From IMG/VR virus record IMGVR_UViG_3300009370_001221, positions 171,364-235,363 of that record: DNA of 64,000 nucleotides; one strand, written 5' to 3'. Numbering within the stretch: position 1 is the stretch's first letter; every line of letters starts with the position of its first letter. This document shows, one piece after another, positions 1,538 to 63,822 of this stretch. Below the pieces are notes generated by a model. The model worked only from the letters and a program-made list of their open reading frames with translations, had not been told where the DNA came from and ran no database searches. A program made the translations under genes and the position numbers.

Positions 1538-2501
1538 ATTAGTAATATCAGGTGGTGATAGTTTTACCTTTGGCAGTGAGTTGTCAGATATTGATGAAAC
1601 TGGAAAGACGCTTGTCCAGCTAATGCCAAGTAAATTTTCCTGGGCAGATCTAGTAGCACAAAAATTAAAAGCAATACATATTAATACTGCTTGGCCTAGT
1701 CGAAGTAATAGTTTTATTACTAGGCATATCATACACGAAGTATCTAAAGCATTACACTACAATCAGAACATTAATTCCGGAATACTCGGACGGCCAGGCC
1801 GAATTCGTCCGTATAGACCTAATGAAATATTCGTTCAAGTAATGTGGACATATCTTGGAAGACACGAAGTTCTTGTTAATAATTTACTTCACGAGTATGA
1901 TCGAGGAGGCAAAGCAGGCAAGCCTGGAACTGGTCCAATATATTATGATAGACCGGATTCTCCATGGTTTAATGTAGATCCACATAGTGCTTTAGATGAT
2001 GTTGATAATAAACTTATAGGGTTTGCAAATTATATAGAAGAGTATTATAAAGTTACTGGAGAGTTAACTGATCATTATATATCTCTTAAAGAAATTTTAT
2101 TTTTACAAGAATTTTTAGAGAATAGAAACATTAAATATATGTTTACGTATGTACACTCTGAGGTTATAGATCAACTTACTGGTATAGATGTAAAAAATGA
2201 ATATACAACAGATTTAGATACACCTATAGATATTATTGATGAACTGCGTAGAGAAATAAAATTTGATGAGTGGTTTAGTTTTTCTTCTTGGGAAATGTTT
2301 GATAGAAAATCGTATGGTGGATTTAAACGCCCAGAAAAAGATTATATTGGTTTTTGGAATTGGGCAGCCGGATCACAACGCACAAGTCCAACAAAGAAGA
2401 GGAAAAAATATAAATTTGGTCCTGGAGGCCACCCATTAGAACAAGCACATATAGATGCGGCGGAGATAATATATGATCACATTAGTAATCTCTGGGGGTG
2501 A
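1527..2501 (+). CDS. SGNH/GDSL hydrolase-like protein
   Basis: N-terminal GGDSFTFG and C-terminal GHPLEQAH. Confidence 0.65.
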   Translation: MSVKLVISGGDSFTFGSELSDIDETGKTLVQLMPSKFSWADLVAQKLKAIHINTAWPSRSNSFITRHIIHEVSKALHYNQNINSGILGRPGRIRPYRPNEIFVQVMWTYLGRHEVLVNNLLHEYDRGGKAGKPGTGPIYYDRPDSPWFNVDPHSALDDVDNKLIGFANYIEEYYKVTGELTDHYISLKEILFLQEFLENRNIKYMFTYVHSEVIDQLTGIDVKNEYTTDLDTPIDIIDELRREIKFDEWFSFSSWEMFDRKSYGGFKRPEKDYIGFWNWAAGSQRTSPTKKRKKYKFGPGGHPLEQAHIDAAEIIYDHISNLWG

Positions 2502-3381
2502 TAGTTTCACGTTTGGTAGTGAATTGTCAGATGATTGTGGCACGATGCACGTGCCGGTAGTCACCAGCACACCCTATCATCGACCAACTCAACCTATAAG
2601 GCTAGGGCCATTCGCAGCTGCAAGTAAACATTCTTGGGCCAATTTAACAGCAAATAAATTAAATGCAAAACATATTAACACGGGAGAGAGTGGCCGTAGT
2701 AATTCCTATATTGTTAGGCATATTATTAATATAATATATGAAGCATTAGAACACAACTATAAACCTGACGAAATATTTGTTCAAGTAATGTGGACATTTG
2801 TGGCAAGACAAGAAATTGCTGTAAATTTTGACATAAAAAGGTATGATAGTCCGTGGTTTGCTGTAGATCCTTATGTATGTGAGGATGAGACTAAATCAAA
2901 TTGGTTTAAAAAAGTATCCAAAAGTGTGCCAAATTGGCAAGAAGTACATGATGATATGCATAAGCGATATTTAATAAACAAAGATTTAGGGTTAGTAGAC
3001 TATGCAAAATCATATTATACAGTTGTAAGTGATTTGCATGACAAATATACATCACTACAGAAAATTTTAATGCTACAAGACTTTTTAGAGAGTAGAAATG
3101 TTAAATATATGTTTACATATGTCAATGAACATGTAATGAAAGGCCTTATTAGTATAGATAAGTTTACTAATGGCTTACATAGTTTTATAAAATTTGATGA
3201 GTGGTTTAAATTTCCCGGCGATAAAGAGTTTATGGGGTTCGATGATTGGGCAAAAGCAAATGGTTATCCATATGCTACGTCACATCCACTTGAACAGGCA
3301 CATAAAGATGCCGCGGAACTGTTATATGAAAAAGCCAAACAAATTATCACAGGAAGCGTGGGGCCAATACCCGGAGAGTGA
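2473..3381 (+). CDS. SGNH/GDSL hydrolase-like protein, paralogue of 1527..2501
   Basis: LVISGGDSFTFGSELSD identical to upstream gene; SHPLEQAH. Confidence 0.65.
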   Translation: MITLVISGGDSFTFGSELSDDCGTMHVPVVTSTPYHRPTQPIRLGPFAAASKHSWANLTANKLNAKHINTGESGRSNSYIVRHIINIIYEALEHNYKPDEIFVQVMWTFVARQEIAVNFDIKRYDSPWFAVDPYVCEDETKSNWFKKVSKSVPNWQEVHDDMHKRYLINKDLGLVDYAKSYYTVVSDLHDKYTSLQKILMLQDFLESRNVKYMFTYVNEHVMKGLISIDKFTNGLHSFIKFDEWFKFPGDKEFMGFDDWAKANGYPYATSHPLEQAHKDAAELLYEKAKQIITGSVGPIPGE

Positions 3382-3382
3382 T

Positions 3383-3532
3383 GTGCAAGAAAAATTAAAA
3401 AGTTTAATAGTACACAAACCTAGTAAAGGTTATCGTTGGTTACGGGATAAGATACTTACTATTAAACGAGAACTTAAATATCGTAAACGTTTAAAAGAAT
3501 TGAAAAAGAAAGATCCATTTATATATAAATGA
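3383..3532 (+). CDS. small basic hypothetical protein (GTG start)
   Basis: GGAG upstream of GTG at 3383; fills gap between two genes; Lys/Arg-rich. Confidence 0.55.
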   Translation: MQEKLKSLIVHKPSKGYRWLRDKILTIKRELKYRKRLKELKKKDPFIYK

Positions 3533-3771
3533 ACATATTAGATTTACACGGTTATAACTTACAAGATGCATACAACGAAACATTAAGTTTTCTCAGAGAT
3601 ATGCACAAAGACAAAGAGAAAAAAGTAAAAGTTATTACTGGTAAAGGAGCAATTGCAAAAGAATTCCCTTTTTGGATAGAAAAAAGTTCTTATATAAAAA
3701 GGTTTGAACCAACAAATGATGGAGGTTGTTGGTACATCACTATGGCTGATCAATACCGACCAACAATGTAA
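3529..3771 (+). CDS. stand-alone Smr domain protein
   Basis: LDLHG, VITGKG and NDGG motifs of the Smr/MutS2 C-terminal domain. Confidence 0.8.
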   Translation: MNILDLHGYNLQDAYNETLSFLRDMHKDKEKKVKVITGKGAIAKEFPFWIEKSSYIKRFEPTNDGGCWYITMADQYRPTM

Positions 3772-4358
3772 TGATTTTTACCAATGGTGATAGTTTTACT
3801 TACGGAGATGAATTAGATAAACCGTATAGCGAAGCATGGCCGTATATTTTATCACAGATGCTTAATTTAGACGTAGTAAATTTTGGTGAAAATGGTAAAG
3901 ATAATGCTGGTATAGTACAAACAACAAAAGATTATTGGTCTATTACTGGTAGTTTTTCTGAAGCCTTCCCGCCTACAATTTGGATTATACAGTGGTCAAC
4001 ATTCAGACGATTTAACGACAACCCCCCAATAGATGTAATATTACAAAAATTAGACAAGCAATATTTGCTTGATTTATACTTTGTACATGTAAGAGACTTA
4101 CAAGATTGGTTTGAAGAGCATAATTTTTCTTATATAATGTTTAATGGTTTTGATAATGAAAAATACATAAGTGATAGTGATTCAGAGTTTAAGCAACTAG
4201 TTGACGATAAGTATTTTATAGGCTGGCCAGATGAAGCAGTAGTAAATTGGGTATATGAATATGAACATGGTCCTAGAGGCCACCCAAGAGCAGAAGGCCA
4301 TAGAAGAATAGCGGAAATACTCTATGAAAATATTAGGAGTAAGTTGCGGTTTCCATGA
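3771..4358 (+). CDS. SGNH/GDSL hydrolase-like protein
   Basis: NGDSFTYG ... GHPRAEGH. Confidence 0.65.
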   Translation: MIFTNGDSFTYGDELDKPYSEAWPYILSQMLNLDVVNFGENGKDNAGIVQTTKDYWSITGSFSEAFPPTIWIIQWSTFRRFNDNPPIDVILQKLDKQYLLDLYFVHVRDLQDWFEEHNFSYIMFNGFDNEKYISDSDSEFKQLVDDKYFIGWPDEAVVNWVYEYEHGPRGHPRAEGHRRIAEILYENIRSKLRFP

Positions 4359-8514: not shown

Positions 8515-11500
8515 ATGTACGACAAAATATATAGGAAAGATTATGATATTCAACAGGCGTCCGAAAGATGTAAAACGAGACATTATTGGTACATTGATAA
8601 TGGGGTTGATTGTAGTGATTTTGATTTTAATTGGACTCCTGTTCCATGGGAATCTAGATTTACTCACGTATTCCCTAGTAAATGGCAACGTGACGGAGGT
8701 ATTAGGTTAGTAAACAAAGACTATCCTAATGGCGATGTTAAATTTAATAAAGAAAAGCAAGTTAGTAGAGTTCCCATTAAAGATAAATGGGTACTTGATC
8801 CTGATACTGATTATATCCATTTTGATTTTAGCTGGCATCCAGATACATTTACAGGGGTATATACTTATGTCTTCCCATCACAGTGGCAACGTGATGGAGG
8901 TACTAGGTATGTAATAGAGCCTGACGCTCCTATTAAATACGTATCTGATCAAGTAACAGTAAGAATACCAAATAAGGATAATTGGAGGCTGAACAAATAT
9001 ACTGACTATACTAATTTCGACTTTAGTTGGCATCCAGATTTATCGCAAGGCGTGTATAATTATATATTCCCATCACAGTGGCAACGTGATGGCGGCACAC
9101 AATATATGGTTGACCGGCTCGCTTTTCCTAAGTACGTATCCGATCAAATAACAAAACGCATTAGTGATTTAAGATATTGGACAATACCAGATGATGTAGA
9201 TACTGATGCGTTTGACTTTAGTTGGCATCCTGATCCAGCACATGGATCATGGACATACGTTTTTCCTTCATTATGGCAACGTAATAGTAGCGTAACGTAT
9301 CGTATAATGCCAGACGCACCAAAAAAATATGTAAGTGATCAAGTAATACGTCCACTACCTAATAAAAAAGATTGGATAATTCCTGACAATATAGATGAGG
9401 ATAGTTTTGATTTTAGTTGGATGCCTGACCCAGATGATCCTCCATACATATATGTTTTTGGCACACAATGGCAAAAGGATGGCGGCCCAATATATAAAGT
9501 AGAAGGTGCTACTGAAATATCTTACTGTACTGAACAATATGCAAAAGCAGTACCGGGTAGAATGCGTCACTGGCATATAACACCAACAGGCACAGACTAT
9601 AGTTCATTTGATTTTAGTTGGCATCCAGAAGAGGCACAAAAAGACTATAAACACATATTTGGTACACAATGGCAAAGAACAAGTCCTATATATTACTATA
9701 GCGGAAGTGATCCTAACCCTAAAGTAAATTACGTAAGTGACCAACGTGTTACAATGAAAAGTAATGCGTTGCCACGTTACACAATAGAAACAACACTAGA
9801 AGATTTAATAGAATCACATCCTGAAGAACGCTTTTGGGCGTTAAATGCAGAGATGGATTATGACAAGTTTGATTTTAGTTGGCATCCTGATTTAAGTCAA
9901 ATGGATTATGTCCATGTGTTTGGTTCTCAGTGGCAAAAGCATAGTCAAACATACTATGTTAATGCTCCTGCTTATTTGAAAGGTAATACCCACTTAAATT
10001 TTGTGGGTGATCAAAAGGTAGTAGCGAATAGTACTCTAGATATATTTTATATGGACAGAGGTGGTGAAGGAAGTAAGGAACGCTTCAATTCACTGGCTCT
10101 GAGACACTCTCAGACGCTCAAGACACGCTACTTTGGTAATACTCGCGATACTTTACTGCGTTGTGCTAAAAAATGCAAGACAAAGCGTTTTTGGGCGGTG
10201 TCAAGTGAGAATAGTTATGGTGATTTTAATTTTGACTGGCATTGTGAGCCATGGCAAAATGGTATGCTCCATGTGTTTGGTTCAAAATGGAATAAATGGA
10301 GTAATACGTTCCTTGTAAATGCTGATGACTTTATTCGTACGTTTGATTGGGCAGATAAAATAGAGGATGTGTATAATTTAAACTTCGTAGAGGATCAACT
10401 AGTAACTACACTGGATGATTTAAACAATATTATATTTTTGGACTTTGGTAACAGTAATGCTGAAGAAGCATATGAAACTGTATACAGTAAGCACCCAAGA
10501 GTTAAACGTATACGCTTTTTTGACAACTATTTGGATACATTTAAGAGAATAATGGCCAAAGCCGATACAGATTATTTTTGGGTCACTAGTAGCATATGCG
10601 ATTATAGCCAATTTGACTTTAGTTGGCAACCGGAGCCGTGGCAGGACACAATGTTACACACATTCCAAAGCGGAGAACAGAAGTTTGGTGATACTTTCTA
10701 TGTTAATAAGGCACATGCAGAGGAACAGTTAAAAGATATTAAGTTATTGGACTGGTATGACAAAGTAAACTATTGTAATGAGCAAATAGTAACAAGAACA
10801 GAGTGGCCTGAAGTAATATATGACACAGATTTAGTTACTGCTATAAAAGAACACACATTTGAGTCACCTTATGTTGCTTTTAAACATAGATCAATGGCCG
10901 AATATAAAACAAATTACGACCCAAGTGTTTGGCGCTCAGAAGATCGCTCTTTACACGTACTTTCACAGAGTGGATCTGTGTCCGTAGTACCGAAAGACTG
11001 TAAAGAGCAAATTTCAAGGCAAGTTTATGACTATCCCTATATCTTGCGCCACGAAGGCATTTATATGCCCGATAAACCACAAGATATAGTGTTTATTTCA
11101 TATGATGAAAAGAATGCCCAGGAAAACTATGAAGTGTTATTAAAATCCTTTCCATATGCTAAACGAGTTGATGGCGTAGAGGGTATGCTTAATGCTATGC
11201 AAGAAGCGGCACGTATATGTGAAACTCCATACTTTTATGCTGTATTTGCTAAAACAGTATTGCATGAAAACTTTAAATTCAACTACCAACCCGATTGGTT
11301 ATCTAATCCTAAAAACTATGTCTTTTATGCGTATAATCCTGTGTTAGACTATAGTTATGGACACGGTAGTATTGTTATGTACGATGCAGAGTGGCTTAAG
11401 GATGTTACAGAGGCAGAATTAGATATAGATTTTACAACTACACACGAAATAGAAGTAATACCTGAGGTAAGTTGTATAAACGTATTTGACAGTGAATATA

Positions 11501-17685: not shown

Positions 17686-17921
17686 CCGAATATTAACCCT
17701 ACTATGTATATAGTAAGAACGCCAAAATTTAATAGGAAAAGACTAGGTTCTCGCCATAAAAGACTAACAATAGTCCACAGAGCGTTTGCTAATAGAAATA
17801 CATAAATGTATAATGGATGTATATTAAACGCCGCCAGTAAAGAACCTATTACTAATACTGATGACGCGGTCCACGCTAAGACTTGGTAAGGTTTTCTAGT
17901 GTTCGCCATGTATGTTCCCAA
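17682..17921 (-). CDS. small membrane protein
   Basis: three hydrophobic segments. Confidence 0.65.
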   Translation of the reverse strand: MGTYMANTRKPYQVLAWTASSVLVIGSLLAAFNIHPLYIYVFLLANALWTIVSLLWREPSLFLLNFGVLTIYIVGLIFG

Positions 17922-18601
17922 TCCTCTATGTGGTATACATAATCTCTATTAAACGGATCGGGCATACGCCGCCTCCACAATGCTTCTGCTAATGTATAGT
18001 CATTGCCTCCTTCTTCCATTCTGTCACCAAAGAATGTGATAGGAGTATTGTCAAAATCACGTAGTATTTGTGACTTATCCATACCAAGTTGTGCTATGTC
18101 TAAACCAGTCTCACCACCAACTGTTGCATATACTTCTTCAAACTGTTTATTAAACTGGTCCGCAATGCGATATCTTTCACGGGTTCGTTTATCATATTTG
18201 ACATACTCTCTGCGTTCTTCACTGTTCGCATTGCGTCCTACTATGCTAAAGTTAAGCATACCTGTGCGGTATTCAAAATGATTGCCAGTGCGTAACGGAA
18301 AATTACTAACTGCTAGGTGTGCCGACAACCATTTCTCTTGCTCATCAGTTATCCTAAACTCATTATGCCATACTTCTACACCATTTTCCCATACACTACT
18401 ACCTGAGCAGTTATAGCATCGCTTAATAGCATTGATTATATCCTCTCCTACTTGTTCTAGTGTTTTAGGATAGTCACTACCAGTAACTAAATGTACTTCG
18501 TGGCTTAAACAAAAGTCTATAAACCACTTTTCAAACGTGGGGTCAATTTTACTCCTGCTAGGAGTTAATGTTCCATCTACATCAAAAATAAATGCTCTCA
18601 T
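17876..18601 (-). CDS. HAD-IIB hydrolase, phosphomannomutase-like
   Basis: FDVDGTLTP, LVTGSD, N.S..GR, FFGDR...GGNDY. Confidence 0.85.
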   Translation of the reverse strand: MRAFIFDVDGTLTPSRSKIDPTFEKWFIDFCLSHEVHLVTGSDYPKTLEQVGEDIINAIKRCYNCSGSSVWENGVEVWHNEFRITDEQEKWLSAHLAVSNFPLRTGNHFEYRTGMLNFSIVGRNANSEERREYVKYDKRTRERYRIADQFNKQFEEVYATVGGETGLDIAQLGMDKSQILRDFDNTPITFFGDRMEEGGNDYTLAEALWRRRMPDPFNRDYVYHIEDWEHTWRTLENLTKS

Positions 18602-19863
18602 GTGAATAACCTATCAAATTGTGTTTGTGTATTTTCATTTGAAGAACTATAAACCCATATAGGCTCTACAAAACAGTCCTGCATATGCTCTTTGTCTCCG
18701 CCTTCCTCATTTTTCGGACGTTGTTTCATCCGCATACCAATTACTTCTTGTAATGGCATATCAAGTGTTTCCATATATTTCGTCATGGGATCACATACTC
18801 TATGCCGTTTGTTTTTAATATTTGCGTCTATAATATTTACCGCTATTACTCCAGTATTAGGATTTATTACTTTATTAATACGATCCAATGTCTCAAACAA
18901 ATAGTCGCTTAACCAATCATAAAAGTCATCATACTTAACCCAACTCTGATTTTCCTCTGCAATACCCTCGGCATATCGCTCCGTGCAAAAATATGGAGGA
19001 CTAGTAAATGCTAAATCATAATTTAATTGTGGCCAATTCATCGTTTCACTGGCTCTGAGATATATTAGTACCTCTTTACTGCCTGAAAAGTGGAAGTAGT
19101 CATCACCTATTTGGTTTGACCAAGTATTGCCTAATGCTTCTTCATAAAATATACATTGAGACATATAATTTTGGAATGTTTGCGGATTTGGATCACATCC
19201 AACATAAGTGTGAGCATTGCTTGCCCAAAACCCAGCAAGCCTATCTCCCCAACCGCAACTGCTGTCTAATATTGTTTTAGCATTAAACCTGTTGTAAACA
19301 TACTTTGCTACACTAGGTTTAAATTGTGTAGCAACATACGCACCGAGTCTAAATGCCTCTCGCCACTTTGTTTCATCAACATACTTGACCATACCTTCAC
19401 GCCAAAATGTCCAATTAAATTTGCGTAGTTTTTCCTCGTCGTTCCATACTGCTATTGGACTGGGGTCTTTCCATCCATTACATTGCAGTCTGTTTTCCTG
19501 ATGGAAATAGTTACTGATATCGTTATAGTAATGACCTAAATCAACTACATCCTTACAGTATTGTTGTACCGAGTAGTCATAATCGTTAAACTTATCCGTA
19601 ATATCTGTAGTGTATCCATATAGGAATTTATTGTGGTCACTGCTTCTTAATTTCAGAAATTTATCCGTAACTGTTTGTTCTGTTATTTGTTGTAATGGAA
19701 ATGGTACTTCTTTCTCCACAATATATTTGGCAAGAGCGTCTATCGCTTCGCTCTTCTCAAATTTACTCTTAAAGTCTTTCCACTCGTCCGCAGAAAAAAC
19801 GGGCAACCCACTAGGGGTCGCCCGCTCCTCCAATACCGATCTTGCGCCGGTTTCTTTTACCAT
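18598..19863 (-). CDS. amino-DNA methyltransferase (N4C/N6A type, orphan)
   Basis: LDSSCGWGDRL (SAM-binding motif) and TSPPYF (catalytic motif). Confidence 0.75.
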   Translation of the reverse strand: MVKETGARSVLEERATPSGLPVFSADEWKDFKSKFEKSEAIDALAKYIVEKEVPFPLQQITEQTVTDKFLKLRSSDHNKFLYGYTTDITDKFNDYDYSVQQYCKDVVDLGHYYNDISNYFHQENRLQCNGWKDPSPIAVWNDEEKLRKFNWTFWREGMVKYVDETKWREAFRLGAYVATQFKPSVAKYVYNRFNAKTILDSSCGWGDRLAGFWASNAHTYVGCDPNPQTFQNYMSQCIFYEEALGNTWSNQIGDDYFHFSGSKEVLIYLRASETMNWPQLNYDLAFTSPPYFCTERYAEGIAEENQSWVKYDDFYDWLSDYLFETLDRINKVINPNTGVIAVNIIDANIKNKRHRVCDPMTKYMETLDMPLQEVIGMRMKQRPKNEEGGDKEHMQDCFVEPIWVYSSSNENTQTQFDRLFT

Positions 19864-23522: not shown

Positions 23523-23578
23523 ATTATAGCATTTATCTGCTAATCTGTCACGGAAAATAGTGCTGTAAGTGCTTGAAT
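23523..23578 (-). promoter_or_regulatory. sigma70-like promoter (GTGACA-17-TATAAT, extended -10) with upstream ATTCAAGCACTTA box
   Basis: motifs read on minus strand upstream of the VWA gene. Confidence 0.6.
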
Positions 23579-23630
23579 TGGCAGGCAGTACTGAGGCATT
23601 GCGCCCGTTCCTGCCTGCCTCCCAAGTATC

Positions 23631-25228: not shown

Positions 25229-25318
25229 ATTATAGCAGATTCCTGTCAGAAGTCTACCTTTTTGGGCCGATAAGTGCTTGATTTCATTGATTTTTCACAT
25301 TTTTTTAAGTCATTGATT
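25229..25318 (-). promoter_or_regulatory. sigma70-like promoter (GTAGAC-17-TATAAT) with two upstream AATCAA(G/T)(C/G)ACTTA boxes
   Basis: same architecture as 23523 and 30297. Confidence 0.65.
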
Positions 25319-25355
25319 TTAAAGGCTTTTTTCGATCTGGGTAAATATTGATGTT

Positions 25356-26078
25356 ATGACACAACAGATCTGGGTTCACGACAGGCTCGATGAAGCATTG
25401 CCATTCTGTGTTCAGACCATAGGCAAGAATGGTAGTACTCGATTACACAAGTGGCTAAACCATTACGAATTTACAAATGCCCGATGGGATTTTGTCGGCA
25501 ATCACGATATCTATAAGCATTTTCCTACCTATGTTTTTATACAAGATCCTATCGATAGATTCGTAAAAGGATTCGCTGAACTAATTAGTAATTTGCGGCC
25601 TGCTTATGATGTAGGTTCACAAGCAGGAGATCCTACCAATATAATAGCATCACCAGCATCAGAGCATGTTAATATTAAGGAAGTATTAAATAAAATGCCT
25701 ACAGATGCTGTAGATGCATTTTTATTTCATTTTCTTCAACATTTAGATATGTACATGCGTGATTATCATCTTAAATTACAGATTAGTATATTAACATCAT
25801 TGTCTAGTTTTAATTTAGAATATGAAGTATTAAAGATAGACGATATAGATAACTTTCACAATATAGCTAAAGAAAAACACGCCCAACATTTTGCTGAGCG
25901 TGTTGATGGACATGCTAATGGATTAATACCTATTGATCCAGAGCGTGTAGAAGATTCTGACCGCCAATTTATAGAAGATCGTGTTCACAAAATCTTAGTT
26001 GACCATTTAGATGGTGAACTCTCGGCTATCCGAGAGTATCTCTTACCTGATTTGGGTTTGTGGGATCTTCTTAATTAA
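25356..26078 (+). CDS. sulfotransferase family 2-like protein
   Basis: TIGKNGST and FIQDPIDRFVKGF. Confidence 0.6.
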   Translation: MTQQIWVHDRLDEALPFCVQTIGKNGSTRLHKWLNHYEFTNARWDFVGNHDIYKHFPTYVFIQDPIDRFVKGFAELISNLRPAYDVGSQAGDPTNIIASPASEHVNIKEVLNKMPTDAVDAFLFHFLQHLDMYMRDYHLKLQISILTSLSSFNLEYEVLKIDDIDNFHNIAKEKHAQHFAERVDGHANGLIPIDPERVEDSDRQFIEDRVHKILVDHLDGELSAIREYLLPDLGLWDLLN

Positions 26079-30296: not shown

Positions 30297-30387
30297 ATTA
30301 TAGCAAATATAGACGAATTGTCTACTATTTTTGTGCTGTAAGTGCTTGATTCTGCTGGATTTTTAAGATTTTTGTAAGTGCTTGATT
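30297..30387 (-). promoter_or_regulatory. sigma70-like promoter (GTAGAC-17-TATAAT) with two upstream AATCAAGCACTTA boxes
   Basis: same architecture as 23523 and 25229. Confidence 0.65.
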
Positions 30388-30398
30388 TTAAAGGGTTT

Positions 30399-30818
30399 TC
30401 AGAAATCGCTAGAATCAGCGATTTTTGCGCTTTCTAAGTATTTTCCCAAGTCGTGACCATTCAGATAAAACATCGTAGCCAGTTTTTCATCAAATATTGA
30501 GATATTCATATATTTCTGTATTCTGCCCATTTTGTTGACATGTATGAAATATGGGCTCGGCATGCGTTTATCCAAGTCCAGATATAGGCGTTGTTTTCCT
30601 GTTACAGATACAGTACTGAGATCAAATCTGTATTCTTTTAGTTTTAACTCTTTTGTGAATGTAAGATAACCTGGTTTTGTGAGTCGCAGACCACTAGAAC
30701 CTCTGACATTATACCACCAAAACAGAGTATACTTTCGTATATTTTCTGTGTTGCGTGGGATATCCAAGAGATCCATAAATTTAATAGTATAATCATTTTT
30801 ATTTAATCTGTTACTCAC
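30399..30818 (-). CDS. hypothetical protein
   Basis: ORF in operon. Confidence 0.65.
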   Translation of the reverse strand: MSNRLNKNDYTIKFMDLLDIPRNTENIRKYTLFWWYNVRGSSGLRLTKPGYLTFTKELKLKEYRFDLSTVSVTGKQRLYLDLDKRMPSPYFIHVNKMGRIQKYMNISIFDEKLATMFYLNGHDLGKYLESAKIADSSDF

Positions 30819-36566: not shown

Positions 36567-36823
36567 TATTGTATTACCGTGCCATCTTTTTGTTTAATTG
36601 CTACTGCCATTTCAATTCCTTCTGGAGTTAATTCGACATAATCTTCATACATTTCTTCTGAAATATCAGAAGAATCAACACCAAATAGTAGTAATAATGA
36701 ACCAACTGATATCTCAGTTATGCCTTCATTTCTGCATTCCAATAGAACTTTTAACATAAGTTCTTCTATTTTTGGATCATTTTGTTTTACGGGCAAGTTG
36801 CTTAAATATTCTGGTATGTCCAT
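36566..36823 (-). CDS. hypothetical protein
   Basis: ORF in operon. Confidence 0.6.
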   Translation of the reverse strand: MDIPEYLSNLPVKQNDPKIEELMLKVLLECRNEGITEISVGSLLLLFGVDSSDISEEMYEDYVELTPEGIEMAVAIKQKDGTVIQ

Positions 36824-37662
36824 TATGTTCCCCAGGCGTTTCCAAATAAATCGGAATGTAGTCTTGGACTGTATTTAAGTCCGTATTTCATTGCTAGATC
36901 TGCAACGTAGCGTGAATTAAAGGAATAATCTTCGTAGCATCCGCCTACTGGCATTACATATACTGGACAATTTACTCCAGCACTTCTGTATGCCTCTACA
37001 GCCTCCAGCACTTCATTAATACCCTCTTCATTATCTATCACGAATTTAAAATACATATCTGATTTTTGAACGGCAGAATATTCTTTTGCTACGTCTGGTT
37101 TAATAGCATCCGACCATATTTCGCCACTTGCTGATAGTTTAGGACTACAAGACCAAGTTATCCATGGCCTGTCAGTACCAGCAAAAAAGTCATTCCATCG
37201 TAATTCTTGTGTTGTATTTGTCTCAAATGTCATGTGCTTTAAACTACTCATTCTTGGATGCTTTAATAATGGCTCATATATACGTTGCCATAACATAGGT
37301 TCACCGCCTGTTACAACTAAATGTATTTCTTCCCATTGATTGCGCGGTGTTATATCTAATAAATCTGTTACTACGCCGTCTATGTCAGTTGTTGTAGCAA
37401 ATCGTTTAAAACGCGGATCCCAACTAGCATAACTATCACAACCTGTTTTAACTAATGGTAATCCATCCATTGCGGTATAATCATCTGGATCAACCCACAA
37501 CCGCTCTTCACTTACCTGCCGTTGTCCAGCACTAACCTCTGGCATTCCAAAGCCTTGGCATTTGAAGTTACAACCAAATAAACGTAGGAATACACTTGGT
37601 GTTCCTACCCATCTACCTTCGCCTTGTAGGCTGTAGAATATTTCAGTATATCTAACTTTCAT
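36823..37662 (-). CDS. queE: 7-carboxy-7-deazaguanine synthase (radical SAM)
   Basis: EIFYSLQGEG..VG.PSVFLR..GCNF.C...GCDS, TGGEP, ETN, SPKL, SPRLH..LFGN. Confidence 0.92.
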   Translation of the reverse strand: MKVRYTEIFYSLQGEGRWVGTPSVFLRLFGCNFKCQGFGMPEVSAGQRQVSEERLWVDPDDYTAMDGLPLVKTGCDSYASWDPRFKRFATTTDIDGVVTDLLDITPRNQWEEIHLVVTGGEPMLWQRIYEPLLKHPRMSSLKHMTFETNTTQELRWNDFFAGTDRPWITWSCSPKLSASGEIWSDAIKPDVAKEYSAVQKSDMYFKFVIDNEEGINEVLEAVEAYRSAGVNCPVYVMPVGGCYEDYSFNSRYVADLAMKYGLKYSPRLHSDLFGNAWGT

Positions 37663-37912
37663 CTTTCTTTTGTTGCTCCATCCATTCTTTCATATCACGT
37701 TTATAGTGTGGTCCGAACCAATGTCGCATTGCCTCTATATGTTTTTTCTCACGTTCTTTTTCATTCTTTTCATGCTCATTTACTATTATAACAATATTCT
37801 TCAAATTGTCAATAGTTACATCTTCTTTTGGCGCACGATAATAATGTGGCTCTTTAAAGTTCTTTAGACTATTTTCCGCAAGTTCTTTAATTTTTTCTAA
37901 TTCATCTTGCAT
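37652..37912 (-). CDS. hypothetical protein
   Basis: ORF in operon. Confidence 0.55.
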   Translation of the reverse strand: MQDELEKIKELAENSLKNFKEPHYYRAPKEDVTIDNLKNIVIIVNEHEKNEKEREKKHIEAMRHWFGPHYKRDMKEWMEQQKKDES

Positions 37913-39056
37913 AACTTTCTATTCCGCCTTCTCTGTGTATGTCCAATGTTAGGCAATGTAGTCCACCATCCCAAAAGAATCTATGTCTAAACGGTGCTAC
38001 TATAGGTTCTATATTGTGTGATCTAAACCATTTAAATAAGTCTTTATTTTCTGTTAAGCATAATACTGTTTCAGGATTTATTACTAATACGTTTACGTCC
38101 CATACTGTTTCCTCACAAAAACCTACCCAATCACTAAACCAGTTATCCACAAAACTAATAAGATCATCATTATGTTCCTCACCAGGAATCCACCATTTAC
38201 CTCTTACCTTGTCTCTAACTTCTAAAAATGGTGACATATTAGACCACTGTGCATCAGGCAAATAATATACGTCCCAACTAGGAAAGTATTTTTTAAAATT
38301 TAATGCTTCTCCGTTACTAATCCAAACGCCAGGTTTAATTGGATTATATATACCATCACTATGTCCATCATTGAAAGCAGTTATTATAGTATAATCTTTT
38401 AATTGCTTTTTAAAATAGTTATAGATATCTATTGGTAACCCATCTAATATTATAGTGTCTCCAAGTCTAACAATACTAGGAGCATCGTTACTATTTCCAA
38501 ATGGAAGATCATCTATAATATTTCCATCGTATTTGTGTAGTTTATTAAATAATGGTTCTAGTGCCGCTATCGTTGCTGGGAAATCTCCGTGATCCTTGCG
38601 TACATCTTTTCTTGTAAGCCTGTATATTGAATCTTTAATAACAATTTGTTCATCTCTTACCATGAGTGGAGGACGAGTTAAGTCACCTGGAAATTCATGT
38701 ATATTGTAATTGTCTAGATATTCTGTAACACCATTTATATCTTTAAATTTAGGCCATTTTTGTAATACTAAATCTCTACGCACTTCCAAGTTATCATCTA
38801 AACATTCTCGCCCTACTTTGTATACATTATACATATTTTCAAAGTCAAATACTTTAGGTCGATTGACTTTTACATTGTACTTCTCTAGTATTTCTCGTAT
38901 GTTCTCTAAATCTTCTATAGTTTCTTCTGTTATTTGTCGCAGAACATTTCTAACACTATTATTTTCTATATAATCAAAAAAGTCAGGACGATAACAATCA
39001 CCAAGCCAACATTCAACTAATGGCTGAAATCCTGTGTTGCAATTTATTACAGCCAA
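37902..39056 (-). CDS. amidinotransferase (pentein superfamily, glycine/inosamine-phosphate amidinotransferase-like)
   Basis: L...V.V.RP, RD..IVI, HSDG, NVL.I, FWDGGLHCLTLD. Confidence 0.8.
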   Translation of the reverse strand: MAVINCNTGFQPLVECWLGDCYRPDFFDYIENNSVRNVLRQITEETIEDLENIREILEKYNVKVNRPKVFDFENMYNVYKVGRECLDDNLEVRRDLVLQKWPKFKDINGVTEYLDNYNIHEFPGDLTRPPLMVRDEQIVIKDSIYRLTRKDVRKDHGDFPATIAALEPLFNKLHKYDGNIIDDLPFGNSNDAPSIVRLGDTIILDGLPIDIYNYFKKQLKDYTIITAFNDGHSDGIYNPIKPGVWISNGEALNFKKYFPSWDVYYLPDAQWSNMSPFLEVRDKVRGKWWIPGEEHNDDLISFVDNWFSDWVGFCEETVWDVNVLVINPETVLCLTENKDLFKWFRSHNIEPIVAPFRHRFFWDGGLHCLTLDIHREGGIESYAR

Positions 39057-39523
39057 CCTTTAAAGCCAGCATCAGGGTTAGTATAAATGGAACTATTCTT
39101 ATCATTTTCTCTAGACTCTACACTAATAACCCATGCTCGTCCTCTTGTACGTTCCCGCAACCATTCATCTGCCCACATACAAATACGCATAGCAGTTCCT
39201 TCCATACCTGGTCCTTCTTCTTGTACAATTAATTTACATACACCCGCATCGTGCATTGCTTGAAATGTTTCCATCCACGGATCATCATGATCAACTACAA
39301 ATGTATGATCATAATTTTCTTCTAACCATTGTTTTACTCCATCCAAGTCACCATAATCAACAAGGAATCCTTCCTTTGTCATTGTCTGTGCGCCAAATAC
39401 AAAGTGAAAACTACGACTATAACCGTGTATTAAATGGCAATTGCCATCGTGTTTGTGCTGTCTATGAGCACACGGAAAGTTCCAAAAACTTTTCGTTGAT
39501 GTAAATTCTGGTACGTCACTCAT
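39047..39523 (-). CDS. queD: 6-carboxy-5,6,7,8-tetrahydropterin synthase
   Basis: CAHR...HDGNCHLIHGY, VDYG, DH, E.T...I, E..KNS. Confidence 0.88.
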   Translation of the reverse strand: MSDVPEFTSTKSFWNFPCAHRQHKHDGNCHLIHGYSRSFHFVFGAQTMTKEGFLVDYGDLDGVKQWLEENYDHTFVVDHDDPWMETFQAMHDAGVCKLIVQEEGPGMEGTAMRICMWADEWLRERTRGRAWVISVESRENDKNSSIYTNPDAGFKGWL

Positions 39524-39532
39524 TGCTCTCTC

Positions 39533-39901
39533 CTAATCTATAATTACCATTCTACATAACCAAACTGGTTCATTTTTCTCTGTGTCCCAATGCGAATATT
39601 CTGCAGAGTCAGAATCTGTCCCGCACGTTTTATCTAACCACTGTCTAACTGTTAATCCCTCTTTACAAGCATGGCAAGATGGTATTAATGCGGCACAACA
39701 GTATCGCCCATCTCCATCTGATGGTGGTACAACCTCATCAATTGGCTCACATTGCTCACCAGTGAGTGTATCCATTCCAAGTACTCCCCAACATGCTTTG
39801 CCTTTTTCTGTCTCACCCCTATCACAACCTGCCAAATCAAAGCATAATAGTATCATTACTACCATGCCCAATATATACTGTGTTCTTTGCTTCATTACCA
39901 A
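39533..39901 (-). CDS. Cys-rich lipoprotein
   Basis: lipobox LAGC after a hydrophobic segment. Confidence 0.65.
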   Translation of the reverse strand: MVMKQRTQYILGMVVMILLCFDLAGCDRGETEKGKACWGVLGMDTLTGEQCEPIDEVVPPSDGDGRYCCAALIPSCHACKEGLTVRQWLDKTCGTDSDSAEYSHWDTEKNEPVWLCRMVIID

Positions 39902-40434
39902 TTCCTATTATACCACCAACATTCCCATGGAAATACGACCCACGATGGATCTTCTGTTTTGTTAATTTCACGAGCATTGAATGCTATGTCTTTAAACTCA
40001 CTGCCCGCGTTATTAAACAATACAGCAAATCTGATATTACGTTTCCATAATGCTTTGTTTTCATCAGGCATATGATATCCCTTCCCATAATGATGAAATA
40101 AATGTGGCTCTATAGTATTTTCCCAATCATTTACCATCCATTTGAAAGTTGCGCCAGTGTCATTAATATCATCTATGATAAGAATCTGTTTGCCTTCTAA
40201 TGCATCCAATGGTATTTCAGAATTAGATTCTTGTTGTACATTATCACGTAACCTAACATCTTGTATAACCATAGGACGATTGAGATAGTGACTTAACATT
40301 ACAGCAGGCAACATACCGCCTCGTGGTATGCCTACTATATAATCAGGCACCCAATTGTCTGCGTTCATTTGATGGCAAATGTCTAATACATACGATTTGA
40401 CATCTTGTGTATTAACATCTATCATTTTTGTCAT
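39895..40434 (-). CDS. type I phosphoribosyltransferase (purine PRT-like)
   Basis: VGIPRGG..PA..LSH, ILIIDDINDTGAT, WVVFPWE. Confidence 0.88.
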   Translation of the reverse strand: MTKMIDVNTQDVKSYVLDICHQMNADNWVPDYIVGIPRGGMLPAVMLSHYLNRPMVIQDVRLRDNVQQESNSEIPLDALEGKQILIIDDINDTGATFKWMVNDWENTIEPHLFHHYGKGYHMPDENKALWKRNIRFAVLFNNAGSEFKDIAFNAREINKTEDPSWVVFPWECWWYNRNW

Positions 40435-40691
40435 TACTTCAACTCCTGTTGTTGATTATCATCCTCTAATAGAGGAAAGTGTTTGGCCTCATATGCCTCA
40501 ATAAGTTCCATCAGTGTCAGCAGTTCCTCAACCCTTTTTAGGGCAGCTTTGTATTCTGCATCAGTTTCAATTGGTTTGTTGCTTGTCATATGTGTTCTGT
40601 CCTTCGTAAATTCTTGGTGCATCTTTTCAAAAGCTTCGACAACCTTTGGATCGTTCATCCACTGCTTTTTAAGTTTGGTAATACTAGTCAT
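40434..40691 (-). CDS. small protein resembling the N-termini of HigA-type antitoxins
   Basis: PIETDAEYKAALKRVEEL...L...IEAYEAKHFP. Confidence 0.55.
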   Translation of the reverse strand: MTSITKLKKQWMNDPKVVEAFEKMHQEFTKDRTHMTSNKPIETDAEYKAALKRVEELLTLMELIEAYEAKHFPLLEDDNQQQELK

Positions 40692-40703
40692 GTTACAATG
40701 TTT

Positions 40704-40809
40704 ACAGTTTTTATCTGCATCTCGTCCTTGGGCACTACCCCTATACGCAACTTAATCGTGGCTAATAGTGCTTGCAATACGACAGACCGGGTAACTGAAA
40801 ACCGGAAAA
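40704..40809 (-). ncRNA. putative structured RNA, copy 1 (family not recognised)
   Basis: ~105-nt near-identical repeat of 63718..63822; nested stems; substitutions keep pairing via G-U on the minus strand. Confidence 0.6.
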
Positions 40810-40817
40810 TATATCTC

Positions 40818-40997
40818 TTACCCCTCTTCCCAATGGCGATAATAAAAATGTTTACCAAGGGCATCTATTTCCTGTTGAGGATAACCATTCTCAACAAGCC
40901 ATTTTTTTACATCCTCTACACCTTCTGGTAACGGTTTAGGAAATCCATATCTCCAACCAGAAGGAGGATCAATCATTTTAATCTTCTTTTTTGTCAT
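40818..40997 (-). CDS. small hypothetical protein (MTKKKIKMIDPPSGWRYGFPK...)
   Basis: 59-aa ORF with ATGA overlap on the folE stop. Confidence 0.65.
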   Translation of the reverse strand: MTKKKIKMIDPPSGWRYGFPKPLPEGVEDVKKWLVENGYPQQEIDALGKHFYYRHWEEG

Positions 40998-41674
40998 GAT
41001 TTGTGTACTAACTGCATAAACTCTGCTCTATGTGCCGAGTCTGTTTTGTATCGTCCACCTAATTTACTTGTGATAGTATATGAACCTGTGTCCTCTACAC
41101 CTCTATGCTTAACACAGAAGTGAGCGGCGTCAATTACCACAGCAACCTCTTCAGTATCTAAAATAAAACTGAGTGCGTGGTAAATTTGTTCTGTTAAACG
41201 TTCTTGTATTTGTGGTCGTTTACTAAAGTATTCTACAATCCTGTTTAATTTGCTTAAACCCAATACTTTGTGTTTCGGAATATATCCTACGTGTGCCTTG
41301 CCATCAATAGCAACTAAATGATGCTCGCAAAAAGAAGATACTTGTATGTTCCTTTCTACAACCATCTCATCGTAGTCTATTTTGTTTGCTACTGCTGTAC
41401 ATTTGGGAAATGCATCTGGACTTAAACCCCAAAATATTTCATTAACATACATTTTAGCAACACGTTTTGGCGTATCCATTAAACTATCGTCTGTTAAATC
41501 CATTCCCACAATCTCAAGAACTTCTTCCATTCTACGTTCGATTGCTTCTATTTTTTCTGTTCTTGAAAGTGTATACAGACTTGAAGTGACAGGCGTTTCA
41601 AGGCCTAACTTTGATAAATGTTCGTGAACTTGCTGACCCAGATGAGAGTCAGTCTTTGTTTTGTTATAACTCAT
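40994..41674 (-). CDS. folE: GTP cyclohydrolase I
   Basis: DTPKRVAKM, SFCEHH, GLSKLNR, RPQIQERLT, H.CV..RG. Confidence 0.96.
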   Translation of the reverse strand: MSYNKTKTDSHLGQQVHEHLSKLGLETPVTSSLYTLSRTEKIEAIERRMEEVLEIVGMDLTDDSLMDTPKRVAKMYVNEIFWGLSPDAFPKCTAVANKIDYDEMVVERNIQVSSFCEHHLVAIDGKAHVGYIPKHKVLGLSKLNRIVEYFSKRPQIQERLTEQIYHALSFILDTEEVAVVIDAAHFCVKHRGVEDTGSYTITSKLGGRYKTDSAHRAEFMQLVHKS

Positions 41675-62819: not shown

Positions 62820-63644
62820 TCAGGTGCGTACCTTTACTCTGTTAATCATTGTTTCTTTGCCGCCGTTATATTTGCTTACTTCATGGCTTTTAACAAAACC
62901 AGCAATCTCAAATTTATCACCTGGTTCGCTATCCTTTGCAAAATCGTGGGTAAAGAATTTTACAACATTCTTATCTTCATCAATACAAGTGACAATTGTA
63001 CAATCATGTGTAGGAATGTAACGAGTGCTTACTACCTCAAGGTCAAAATTACATCTTTTACCCTGTGTGCCGACATAGTCGCTAACATCAGCAAGGTCAC
63101 GCTCTACCTCAGCGGCCTTATCCCATTTTTTAGCATTGTAAAATGCTTTGGGTAATGATGCTACCAAGCCAAATTCATTAATTGGTACCTGCTCCTCGTT
63201 TATAACTTTGAGGATTTTTTTATTAAAATCACTCATTTTGCCGCTTAACTGCTTAAACAGCAATCCCTGAAAGTAGGAGGTTATATCCTCTGCCAATTCC
63301 TTATCTTTGGCAGTAATTTTTACCTCTTTGCCATGCTGGATGTCATCATATGCAAGAACCATATGATCTCTGTTTGCCATCATTATAACACGATCCACGT
63401 TATTTGATATGCCCTTCTGATGCGCCTGGTGTTTTTCATACTTCGCATCTAATGCGGCATAGTATGCTTCCTGGCTCTTAACGTGAGTTCGTTTATTCAA
63501 ACGATATGCAACACAGGATAATTGAATAGCCAGTGGGGTTTCAACCATTGCTTCGTTTTTACGATGCATACGGTAAATTTTACCAGCACCCAACGTATCA
63601 CGTTTAAAACAATGATTACGATCTTTTGGTTTTACGTGAGCCAT
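62820..63644 (-). CDS. hypothetical protein with C-terminal OB-fold-like region (start MAHVKP)
   Basis: YVG..G.R.......V.....I...........D......F...G.VK.H...G.K.T.INRV. Confidence 0.6.
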   Translation of the reverse strand: MAHVKPKDRNHCFKRDTLGAGKIYRMHRKNEAMVETPLAIQLSCVAYRLNKRTHVKSQEAYYAALDAKYEKHQAHQKGISNNVDRVIMMANRDHMVLAYDDIQHGKEVKITAKDKELAEDITSYFQGLLFKQLSGKMSDFNKKILKVINEEQVPINEFGLVASLPKAFYNAKKWDKAAEVERDLADVSDYVGTQGKRCNFDLEVVSTRYIPTHDCTIVTCIDEDKNVVKFFTHDFAKDSEPGDKFEIAGFVKSHEVSKYNGGKETMINRVKVRT

Positions 63645-63717
63645 TTTACCATTTCCTGTCTGGAGCAAATGTCATTTCAGTTTTCATCTGGTTTGTTCTC
63701 TTGTTTAGTTTCCTGTA

Positions 63718-63822
63718 ACAGTTTTTATCTGCATCTCGTTCTTGGGCACTATCCCTATACGCAACTTAATCGTGGCTAATAGTACTTGCTAACGACAGAC
63801 CGGGTAACTGAAAACCGGAAAA
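63718..63822 (-). ncRNA. putative structured RNA, copy 2 (family not recognised)
   Basis: near-identical to 40704..40809 with pairing-compatible substitutions. Confidence 0.6.

Follow-up and report, generated by a model that had tools for sequence, protein, structure and literature searches.

A previously undescribed family of putative small RNAs with a covariation-supported pseudoknot, usually carried within the tRNA gene arrays of aquatic phages

Two copies of a conserved element in a phage contig

The DNA analyzed here (the window) is the last 64 kb of a 235-kb virus contig from IMG/VR (record IMGVR_UViG_3300009370_001221, positions 171,364 to 235,363), which CheckV estimates to be 67% complete and which has a GC content of 36%. 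A cluster of 7-deazaguanine-type genes, coding for GTP cyclohydrolase I, a PRTase, QueD and a QueE-like protein, lies on its minus strand. Between the 59-aa ORF that follows the GTP cyclohydrolase I gene and an 85-aa ORF followed by the PRTase gene, we found a repeat of about 105 nt whose second copy lies 23 kb away, upstream of a 274-aa ORF of unknown function (Table 1). The repeats had been proposed in an initial annotation, made from the sequence alone, as a two-copy element with RNA-type covariation located just upstream of a gene on the coding strand, and this observation holds. Direct-repeat families D4 and D13 cover both positions, and a pairwise alignment shows a block of about 105 nt with five substitutions and one indel, bordered by unrelated flanks. 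A BLAST and a covariance-model search of the whole 235-kb contig found exactly these two copies, which are 95% identical. Both are located in intergenic spacers of the minus strand, the coding strand of all the neighboring genes; copy 1 ends 11 nt before the ATG of the 85-aa ORF and copy 2 ends 72 nt before the 274-aa ORF. As the initial annotation indicated, the differences between the copies are structure-neutral (C-G to U-G, U-G to U-A, and a loop indel).

To determine whether the element belongs to a described RNA family, we searched Rfam 15. There were no hits at the gathering score in the whole window, only chance-level hits at E<=10 for copy 1, and none at E<=10 for a homolog, L003 (L numbers designate the individual loci retrieved in this work). 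In particular, none of the preQ1-I, -II or -III riboswitch models (RF00522, RF01054, RF02680) matched even at E<=10, nor did any hammerhead, twister, pistol, hatchet or HDV model. ARAGORN found no tRNA or tmRNA in the window, and in the homologous loci the flanking tRNAs and tmRNA were called but never the element. The 58-aa and 49-aa ORFs that overlap the copies are not conserved, and the family has 1-3-nt indels. Folding energy alone was not better than that of shuffled sequences (z-scores of −0.25 and −0.87), so support for an RNA had to come from comparative data and not from thermodynamics.

Table 1. Positions of the element, its predicted structural parts and other features (window coordinates unless another locus is named)
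Locus	Position	Strand	Feature
Window	40703-40805	−	Copy 1, core (103 nt), first base of hairpin Pa to last base of the pseudoknot 3′ strand; covariance model R1 score 143 bits
Window	40704-40809; 63718-63822		Repeat families D4 and D13
Window	63717-63818	−	Copy 2, core (102 nt); R1 score 143 bits
Window	40787-40805	−	Copy 1, 5′ hairpin: Pa CCGG (40802-40805) with CCGG (40787-40790); loop with invariant UU (40800-40801), pseudoknot 5′ strand UUCAGUU (40793-40799), linker AC (40791-40792)
Window	40703-40713	−	Copy 1, invariant A-rich linker UAAA (40710-40713) and pseudoknot 3′ strand AACUGUA (40703-40709)
Window	40714-40786	−	Copy 1, embedded long hairpin: P2a UCUG/CAGA (40783-40786 / 40714-40717, invariant); bulge GAUG (40718-40721); P2b UCGU/ACGA (40779-40782 / 40722-40725); internal loop, invariant GCAA (40772-40775) opposite CCAAGG (40726-40731); P3 (40764-40771 / 40732-40739); P4 ACG/CGU (40757-40759 / 40745-40747); apical loop AUUAAGUUG (40748-40756)
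Window	63724-63799	−	Copy 2, embedded long hairpin plus UAAA linker (63724-63727): P2a 63796-63799 / 63728-63731; P2b 63792-63795 / 63736-63739; P3 63778-63785 / 63746-63753; P4 63771-63773 / 63759-63761; apical loop 63762-63770
Window	40434-40691	−	85-aa ORF directly downstream of copy 1
Window	40818-40997	−	59-aa ORF directly upstream of copy 1; stop codon 12 nt before Pa
Window	36823-41674	−	7-deazaguanine-type cluster: QueE-like 36823-37662; QueD/PTPS 39047-39523; PRTase 39895-40434; GTP cyclohydrolase I 40994-41674
Window	62820-63644	−	274-aa ORF of unknown function (PHROG 2319) downstream of copy 2
Window	23560-23585; 25271-25330; 30333-30401	−	Intergenic motif AATCAAGCACTTAC (read on the minus strand), twice in tandem at 30333-30401
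Window	8608-10635		Eight in-frame repeats, period about 195 nt (families D1 and D2)
Window	1553-3814		Segments 70-83% identical, spaced about 940-970 nt apart (D3, D6, D7, D8)
Window's 235-kb contig (G000 C1)	17751-18845; 25759-25845		tRNA and tmRNA calls: one 87-nt tRNA-Asn and two implausible tmRNAs with long odd tags
L010	3203-3240		abiF motif (RF03085)
L025	3498-3535		abiF motif
L027	6933-6970; 6769-6805		abiF motifs
L031	7985-8022; 7821-7857		abiF motifs
L033	749-786		abiF motif
L038	2130-2166		abiF motif
L030	206-242		abiF motif
L074 (Roseobacter phage CRP-143)	1501-1538		abiF motif
L075 (Mycobacterium phage Thibault)	1507-1543		abiF motif
L076 (Acinetobacter phage Acj61)	1497-1533		abiF motif
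L027	6504-6763		Permuted (two-piece) tmRNA
L031	7541-7815		Permuted (two-piece) tmRNA
L003	6935-7068; 7309-7436; 8107-8192; 8268-8442; 8526-8798; 8873-9087		Other non-tRNA gaps (86-273 nt) of the tRNA array
L094 (T4)	3054-3172		rnaD

Homologs and structure

To obtain homologs of the element, we ran exact-pattern scans of IMG/VR and JGI metagenome contigs, which gave 13 distinct variants (group 1). Scans built on other conserved parts then gave seven more divergent variants, namely L078, L084, L085/87/88, L086, L089 and L092 (group 2), and L093 (group 3). A covariance model built from group 1 alone found groups 2 and 3 at E values of 1e-16 to 1e-26, so all of them belong to one family. Further viral scans returned only chance hits, including a lytic-transglycosylase-like coding motif in high-GC phages. 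No true copy was found in two pattern scans of one genome each of 185,579 prokaryote species, the only match being a 21-nt chance hit inside a coding region of a Planctomycetaceae genome. Nor was any match obtained by blastn of the element against 50,697 GenBank phage records or against E. coli genomes.

We tested the structure on the alignment of the 20 distinct variants. Of the pair cells, 93.2% form standard pairs, against 35-50% when partners are slid by 1-3 columns; 14 of 30 pairs change on both sides, as do 66 cells, and none of 500 shuffles reaches these values. An anchor-based parse of 19 variants that does not depend on the model gave 92.8% paired cells, with compensation at the same 14 pairs. 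Frequent G-U pairs (for example UG/UA/CG at three P3 and P2b positions) place the structure on the minus strand of the window. Of the five nested stems in the initial annotation, the four inner ones (UCUG/CAGA, UCGU/ACGA, GCACUAU/GUAGUGC and ACG/CGU, here P2a, P2b, P3 and P4) were confirmed: P3 has compensatory changes in 7 of its 8 pairs, P2b in two and P4 in one, while P2a never varies. The outer stem CGGUUUU/AAAACUG was not confirmed, as only 81% of its cells pair, there are no compensatory changes, and two pairs are broken in most homologs. Instead, the 5′ end forms a 4-bp hairpin, Pa (CCGG/CCGG), and seven nucleotides of its loop pair with the 3′ tail. Three of these pseudoknot pairs show compensatory changes, switching between U-A/G-C, C-G/U-A and A-U/G-C, and in L093 one pair is lost through a matching deletion on both strands. 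Support for Pa rests on one independent double substitution, its only change, to CCUG/CAGG in L013.

The fold is therefore an H-type pseudoknot in which loop 1 is an invariant UU, a hairpin of about 70 nt is embedded after stem 1, and an invariant UAAA leads into stem 2. Other invariant unpaired elements are GCAA, the apical loop AUUNAGUUG and the bulge GAUR. About 40 nucleotides are invariant across the 20 variants, although this count is inflated, and diversity under-sampled, because all the homologs were found with exact patterns.

Genomic context and carrier phages

The context of the homologs changes the reading of the element. In 16 of the 20 variants it sits inside phage tRNA arrays, on the tRNA strand and next to tRNA or tmRNA genes, about 4 nt after one tRNA and 8-13 nt before the next. 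In L003, an array of 18 tRNAs, it fills the gap between tRNA-Asp and tRNA-Ala, after seven and before 11 tRNAs, with spacers of 4 and 9 nt. In group 2 (for example L078, L087 and L092) the layout is tRNA-Thr, 4 nt, element, 8-9 nt, and then tRNA-Leu or tRNA-Lys, and in L093 (21 tRNAs) the element follows tRNA-Gln by 4 nt. It precedes tRNA-Thr by 8-13 nt in L007/L010, L030, L032, L033 and L038, and lies just upstream of a permuted tmRNA in L027 and L031. The tag of this tmRNA, ANDDVYTEDFALAA, resembles alphaproteobacterial tags and hints at the host group of these estuarine phages. The other non-tRNA gaps of the L003 array have no homolog in the other loci, and some may be further uncharacterized RNAs. 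The window's phage differs in that its contig shows a single tRNA call and no tRNA array in the 235 kb available. Only the window's two copies and two Tara contigs (L028 and L029) have protein-coding neighbors, and their downstream ORFs are unrelated to each other. The 85-aa ORF next to copy 1, which is not conserved beside the element elsewhere, has a weak PHROG match to transcriptional regulators (phrog_1373, E 3e-6), and its C-terminal half resembles the N-termini of HigA-type antitoxins.

In six distinct estuarine variants (seven loci), an abiF RNA motif (RF03085, 48-57 bits against a cut-off of 37) lies immediately 5′ of the element, and in L027 and L031 also 3′. The abiF motif is the RNA antitoxin that binds and neutralizes the AbiF HEPN toxin (PMC12373285), but none of the ten neighboring ORFs tested matched Abi_2. 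These orphan motifs are candidate phage-encoded antitoxin mimics against host AbiF. No abiF motif was found in groups 2 and 3. The same motif also scores above threshold in unannotated intergenic regions of three cultured GenBank phages (L074 to L076), at sites between the scaffold and capsid genes, upstream of a tRNA-Gly, and next to a homing endonuclease, so orphan abiF motifs seem widespread in phages.

The carrier phages are not close relatives. The window's phage, a complete 98-kb phage (G001) and a 79-kb contig that is about half complete (G002) share only 9-12 ORF matches at 21-58% identity, with one pair at 66%. None of these is from the deazaguanine cluster, and G001 and G002 have no FolE, QueD or QueE homologs. 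By contrast, the RNA core is 80-99% identical while its flanks are at random level. Each window copy is identical in 3-5 related contigs whose flanks differ, and the two-copy arrangement is kept in relatives, on the contigs behind L006/L009 and L008/L011. The one unknown protein shared by the three carriers is PHROG 11543. No protein family is shared near the element across groups, which points to a host partner or an RNA-only function.

Neither a terminator nor a sigma-70 promoter was found at the window copies, and the 5′ flank AGAGAYAUAU is not a repeated motif of the genome. As for transcription, the evidence is weak. In two marine metatranscriptome runs, assembled (Logan) contigs cover only 40605-40986 of a 5.9-kb stretch, that is, the element plus its immediate flanks, while the deazaguanine genes are silent. 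This argues against uniform DNA carry-over and for transcription, but the depth is 2-4 and the contigs break at the repeat, so that no RNA ends can be read.

Interpretation

The initial annotation interpreted the element as an unrecognized cis-regulatory RNA, ribozyme or sRNA, and this is partly supported: that it is an unrecognized structured RNA is well supported, whereas the implied link to the deazaguanine genes, as a cis-regulatory RNA or riboswitch for PRTase/queD, is not. Of the three options the sRNA is favored, the ribozyme remains open, and a metabolite-sensing leader is unlikely. What our analysis establishes is a conserved, strand-specific pseudoknotted RNA that normally occupies a slot in tRNA arrays of unrelated aquatic phages, without an expression platform or a conserved protein neighbor. 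From this we infer, with moderate confidence, that each copy is a gene for a structured small RNA of about 105-115 nt. In this view the RNA would be transcribed as part of polycistronic tRNA or mRNA transcripts and cut out by the host nucleases that mature the flanking tRNAs (RNase P at the downstream tRNA, RNase E and exonucleases after the upstream one). As a putatively stable product, it would then act in trans, through its invariant single-stranded elements (UU, GCAA, AUUNAGUUG, GAUR and UAAA), on a conserved host or phage factor tied to tRNA or translation. In the window's phage two copies would have been placed in mRNA intergenic spacers, although their position directly upstream of ORFs also fits a cis-acting role, and the deazaguanine neighborhood of copy 1 would be incidental. 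It is only speculation that the RNA serves as a decoy or inhibitor of a host defense or RNA-targeting nuclease, like the orphan abiF antitoxin motifs beside it in some phages. This idea rests only on the company the element keeps (tRNAs, tmRNA and orphan abiF motifs) and on the published role of the abiF RNA; the abiF adjacency is limited to one estuarine subgroup, and no target or partner protein was found.

We considered it unlikely, though not excluded, that the element is a self-cleaving or otherwise self-processing RNA that punctuates polycistronic transcripts. Such an RNA would cut near its own 5′ boundary, free the 3′ end of the upstream tRNA (or separate operon segments in the window's phage) and leave a structured 5′ end on the downstream RNA, as a new ribozyme class doing the job of HDV-like theta ribozymes. 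In nine loci (seven distinct variants), including L003, L078, L085, L087, L088, L089, L092 and L093, the element starts 4-6 nt after the 3′ end of a tRNA (tRNA-Asp, -Thr or -Gln in those named), and theta ribozymes next to phage tRNAs are a published precedent (PMC10879173). The element also has the helix order of HDV-like ribozymes (P1 5′, P2 5′, P1 3′, P4, J4/2, P2 3′), many invariant unpaired nucleotides, and a U at position −2 before Pa that is conserved in all 20 variants, and one mechanism would explain both the tRNA-array and the mRNA-spacer contexts. Nevertheless, the defining features of HDV are absent. There is no P3, L3 or P1.1, as only 2-5 variable nucleotides lie between the pseudoknot 5′ strand and the 3′ strand of Pa, and the first J4/2 position is U in 20 of 20 variants, where the catalytic C is required and C-to-U inactivates those ribozymes (PMC10879173). 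Besides, the first helix has 4 bp and starts with C rather than G, and new ribozyme classes are rare.

A ligand-independent cis-acting leader is slightly less likely still. It would be a processing or stability module (a protective 5′ structure after RNase cleavage) or a put-like antitermination element that modifies RNA polymerase and acts on whatever lies downstream. The element is always co-oriented with, and just upstream of, a tRNA, a tmRNA or an ORF, and each of the two copies in the window's phage lies ahead of an operon segment. However, it sits mid-array and not at transcript starts, there is no consistent promoter or terminator nearby, the distance to the next gene varies from 8 to about 100 nt, and the very high conservation of its loops is not needed for a simple stabilizer.

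A riboswitch for a 7-deazapurine such as preQ0 or preQ1, controlling the downstream PRTase/queD genes, is very unlikely. The location of copy 1 and the architecture, an H-type pseudoknot with an A-rich strand before the 3′ pairing and, as in preQ1 classes II and III, an embedded hairpin, are reminiscent of preQ1 riboswitches, and conserved loops and covarying stems are typical of aptamers. But this is a resemblance only: besides the lack of a model match, 16 of 20 variants lie between tRNA genes, the window-like variants L028 and L029 precede unrelated small ORFs, copy 2 precedes an unrelated gene, and there is no conserved position ahead of queuosine or preQ genes. The linker before the 3′ strand of Pa, which corresponds to the ligand-reading loop of preQ1-I, varies in length (2-5 nt) and ends in C or U. 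Finally, although the repeat clearly moves between unrelated phage backbones, a DNA-level repeat (a recombination site, a MITE-like element or an origin) or a chance similarity is effectively refuted by compensatory changes whose many G-U pairs work only on one strand. The constant co-orientation with the flanking genes, the absence of terminal inverted repeats beyond the helices, and the 95% identity over 105 nt between unrelated flanks also speak against it.

Comparison with known RNAs

Small stable RNAs encoded within phage tRNA clusters are already known; what is new here is the family, which is not a member of any described RNA family, and its fold. The closest in kind are phage T4 species 1 (rnaC) and species 2 (rnaD), of 119-139 nt, which are encoded on the tRNA strand inside a tRNA cluster, 1-6 nt from their neighbors, and are presumably released by tRNA-processing enzymes. 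They have been known for decades without an assigned function. We found no homology to them, as covariance model R1 with filters off gave no hit on either. The T4 RNAs have tRNA-like 3′ parts (a T-arm-like hairpin in rnaC and a ...CACCA end in rnaD), while the present RNA has neither and is pseudoknotted. T4 rnaD also begins with a CCGG-loop-CCGG hairpin followed by a long hairpin and ends ...CAGAAACGGCGCACC, and its hairpin loop (GUCG) could pair with the 3′ CGGC, but this putative pairing is a superficial echo of the present fold that the model did not detect. HDV-like theta ribozymes (PMC10879173) resemble the element in their placement directly 3′ of phage tRNA genes and in the order of strands, with an outer hairpin, a second helix formed with the 3′ end and a large inserted hairpin. 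The abiF motif occurs in the same phage RNA islands, suggesting that these islands collect protein-binding decoy RNAs, but it is a separate 37-nt hairpin; the element does not match RF03085, is not repeated in tandem, and occurs without abiF motifs in most variants. GOLLD and ROOL are phage- or prophage-borne structured RNAs of unknown function that lie near phage tRNAs and may be co-transcribed with them (PMC5737381). They are roughly five to eight times larger, they form homo-oligomeric complexes (PMC12286853), and their Rfam models do not match the element.

Phage tRNA arrays are increasingly seen as counter-defense and takeover modules, yet their non-tRNA residents are almost unstudied. 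The conservation of this RNA in marine and estuarine phages, and in phages from other samples, that share almost no proteins implies a conserved molecular target and horizontal spread, and makes it a tractable candidate for finding a new RNA-based phage-host interaction or a new ribozyme. It is possible, though doubtful on present evidence, that the element is a new functional RNA class exchanged horizontally by phages, either a new self-cleaving ribozyme that processes tRNA-array and operon transcripts or a new RNA decoy that neutralizes a conserved host tRNA- or translation-directed defense nuclease. The latter would be an RNA counterpart of anti-defense proteins, co-residing with orphan abiF antitoxin mimics. 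For this window, a tempting annotation as a deazaguanine riboswitch is not supported.

Other features of the window

The intergenic motif AATCAAGCACTTAC recurs in the window and is followed by AAAA-N-GTAGAC, which looks like a phage-specific promoter or operator rather than a sigma-70 site. The segments of families D3, D6, D7 and D8 indicate two or three tandem paralogous genes. The in-frame repeats of families D1 and D2 carry a conserved DFDFSWHP-like block and probably belong to a repeat-domain structural or adhesin-like protein.
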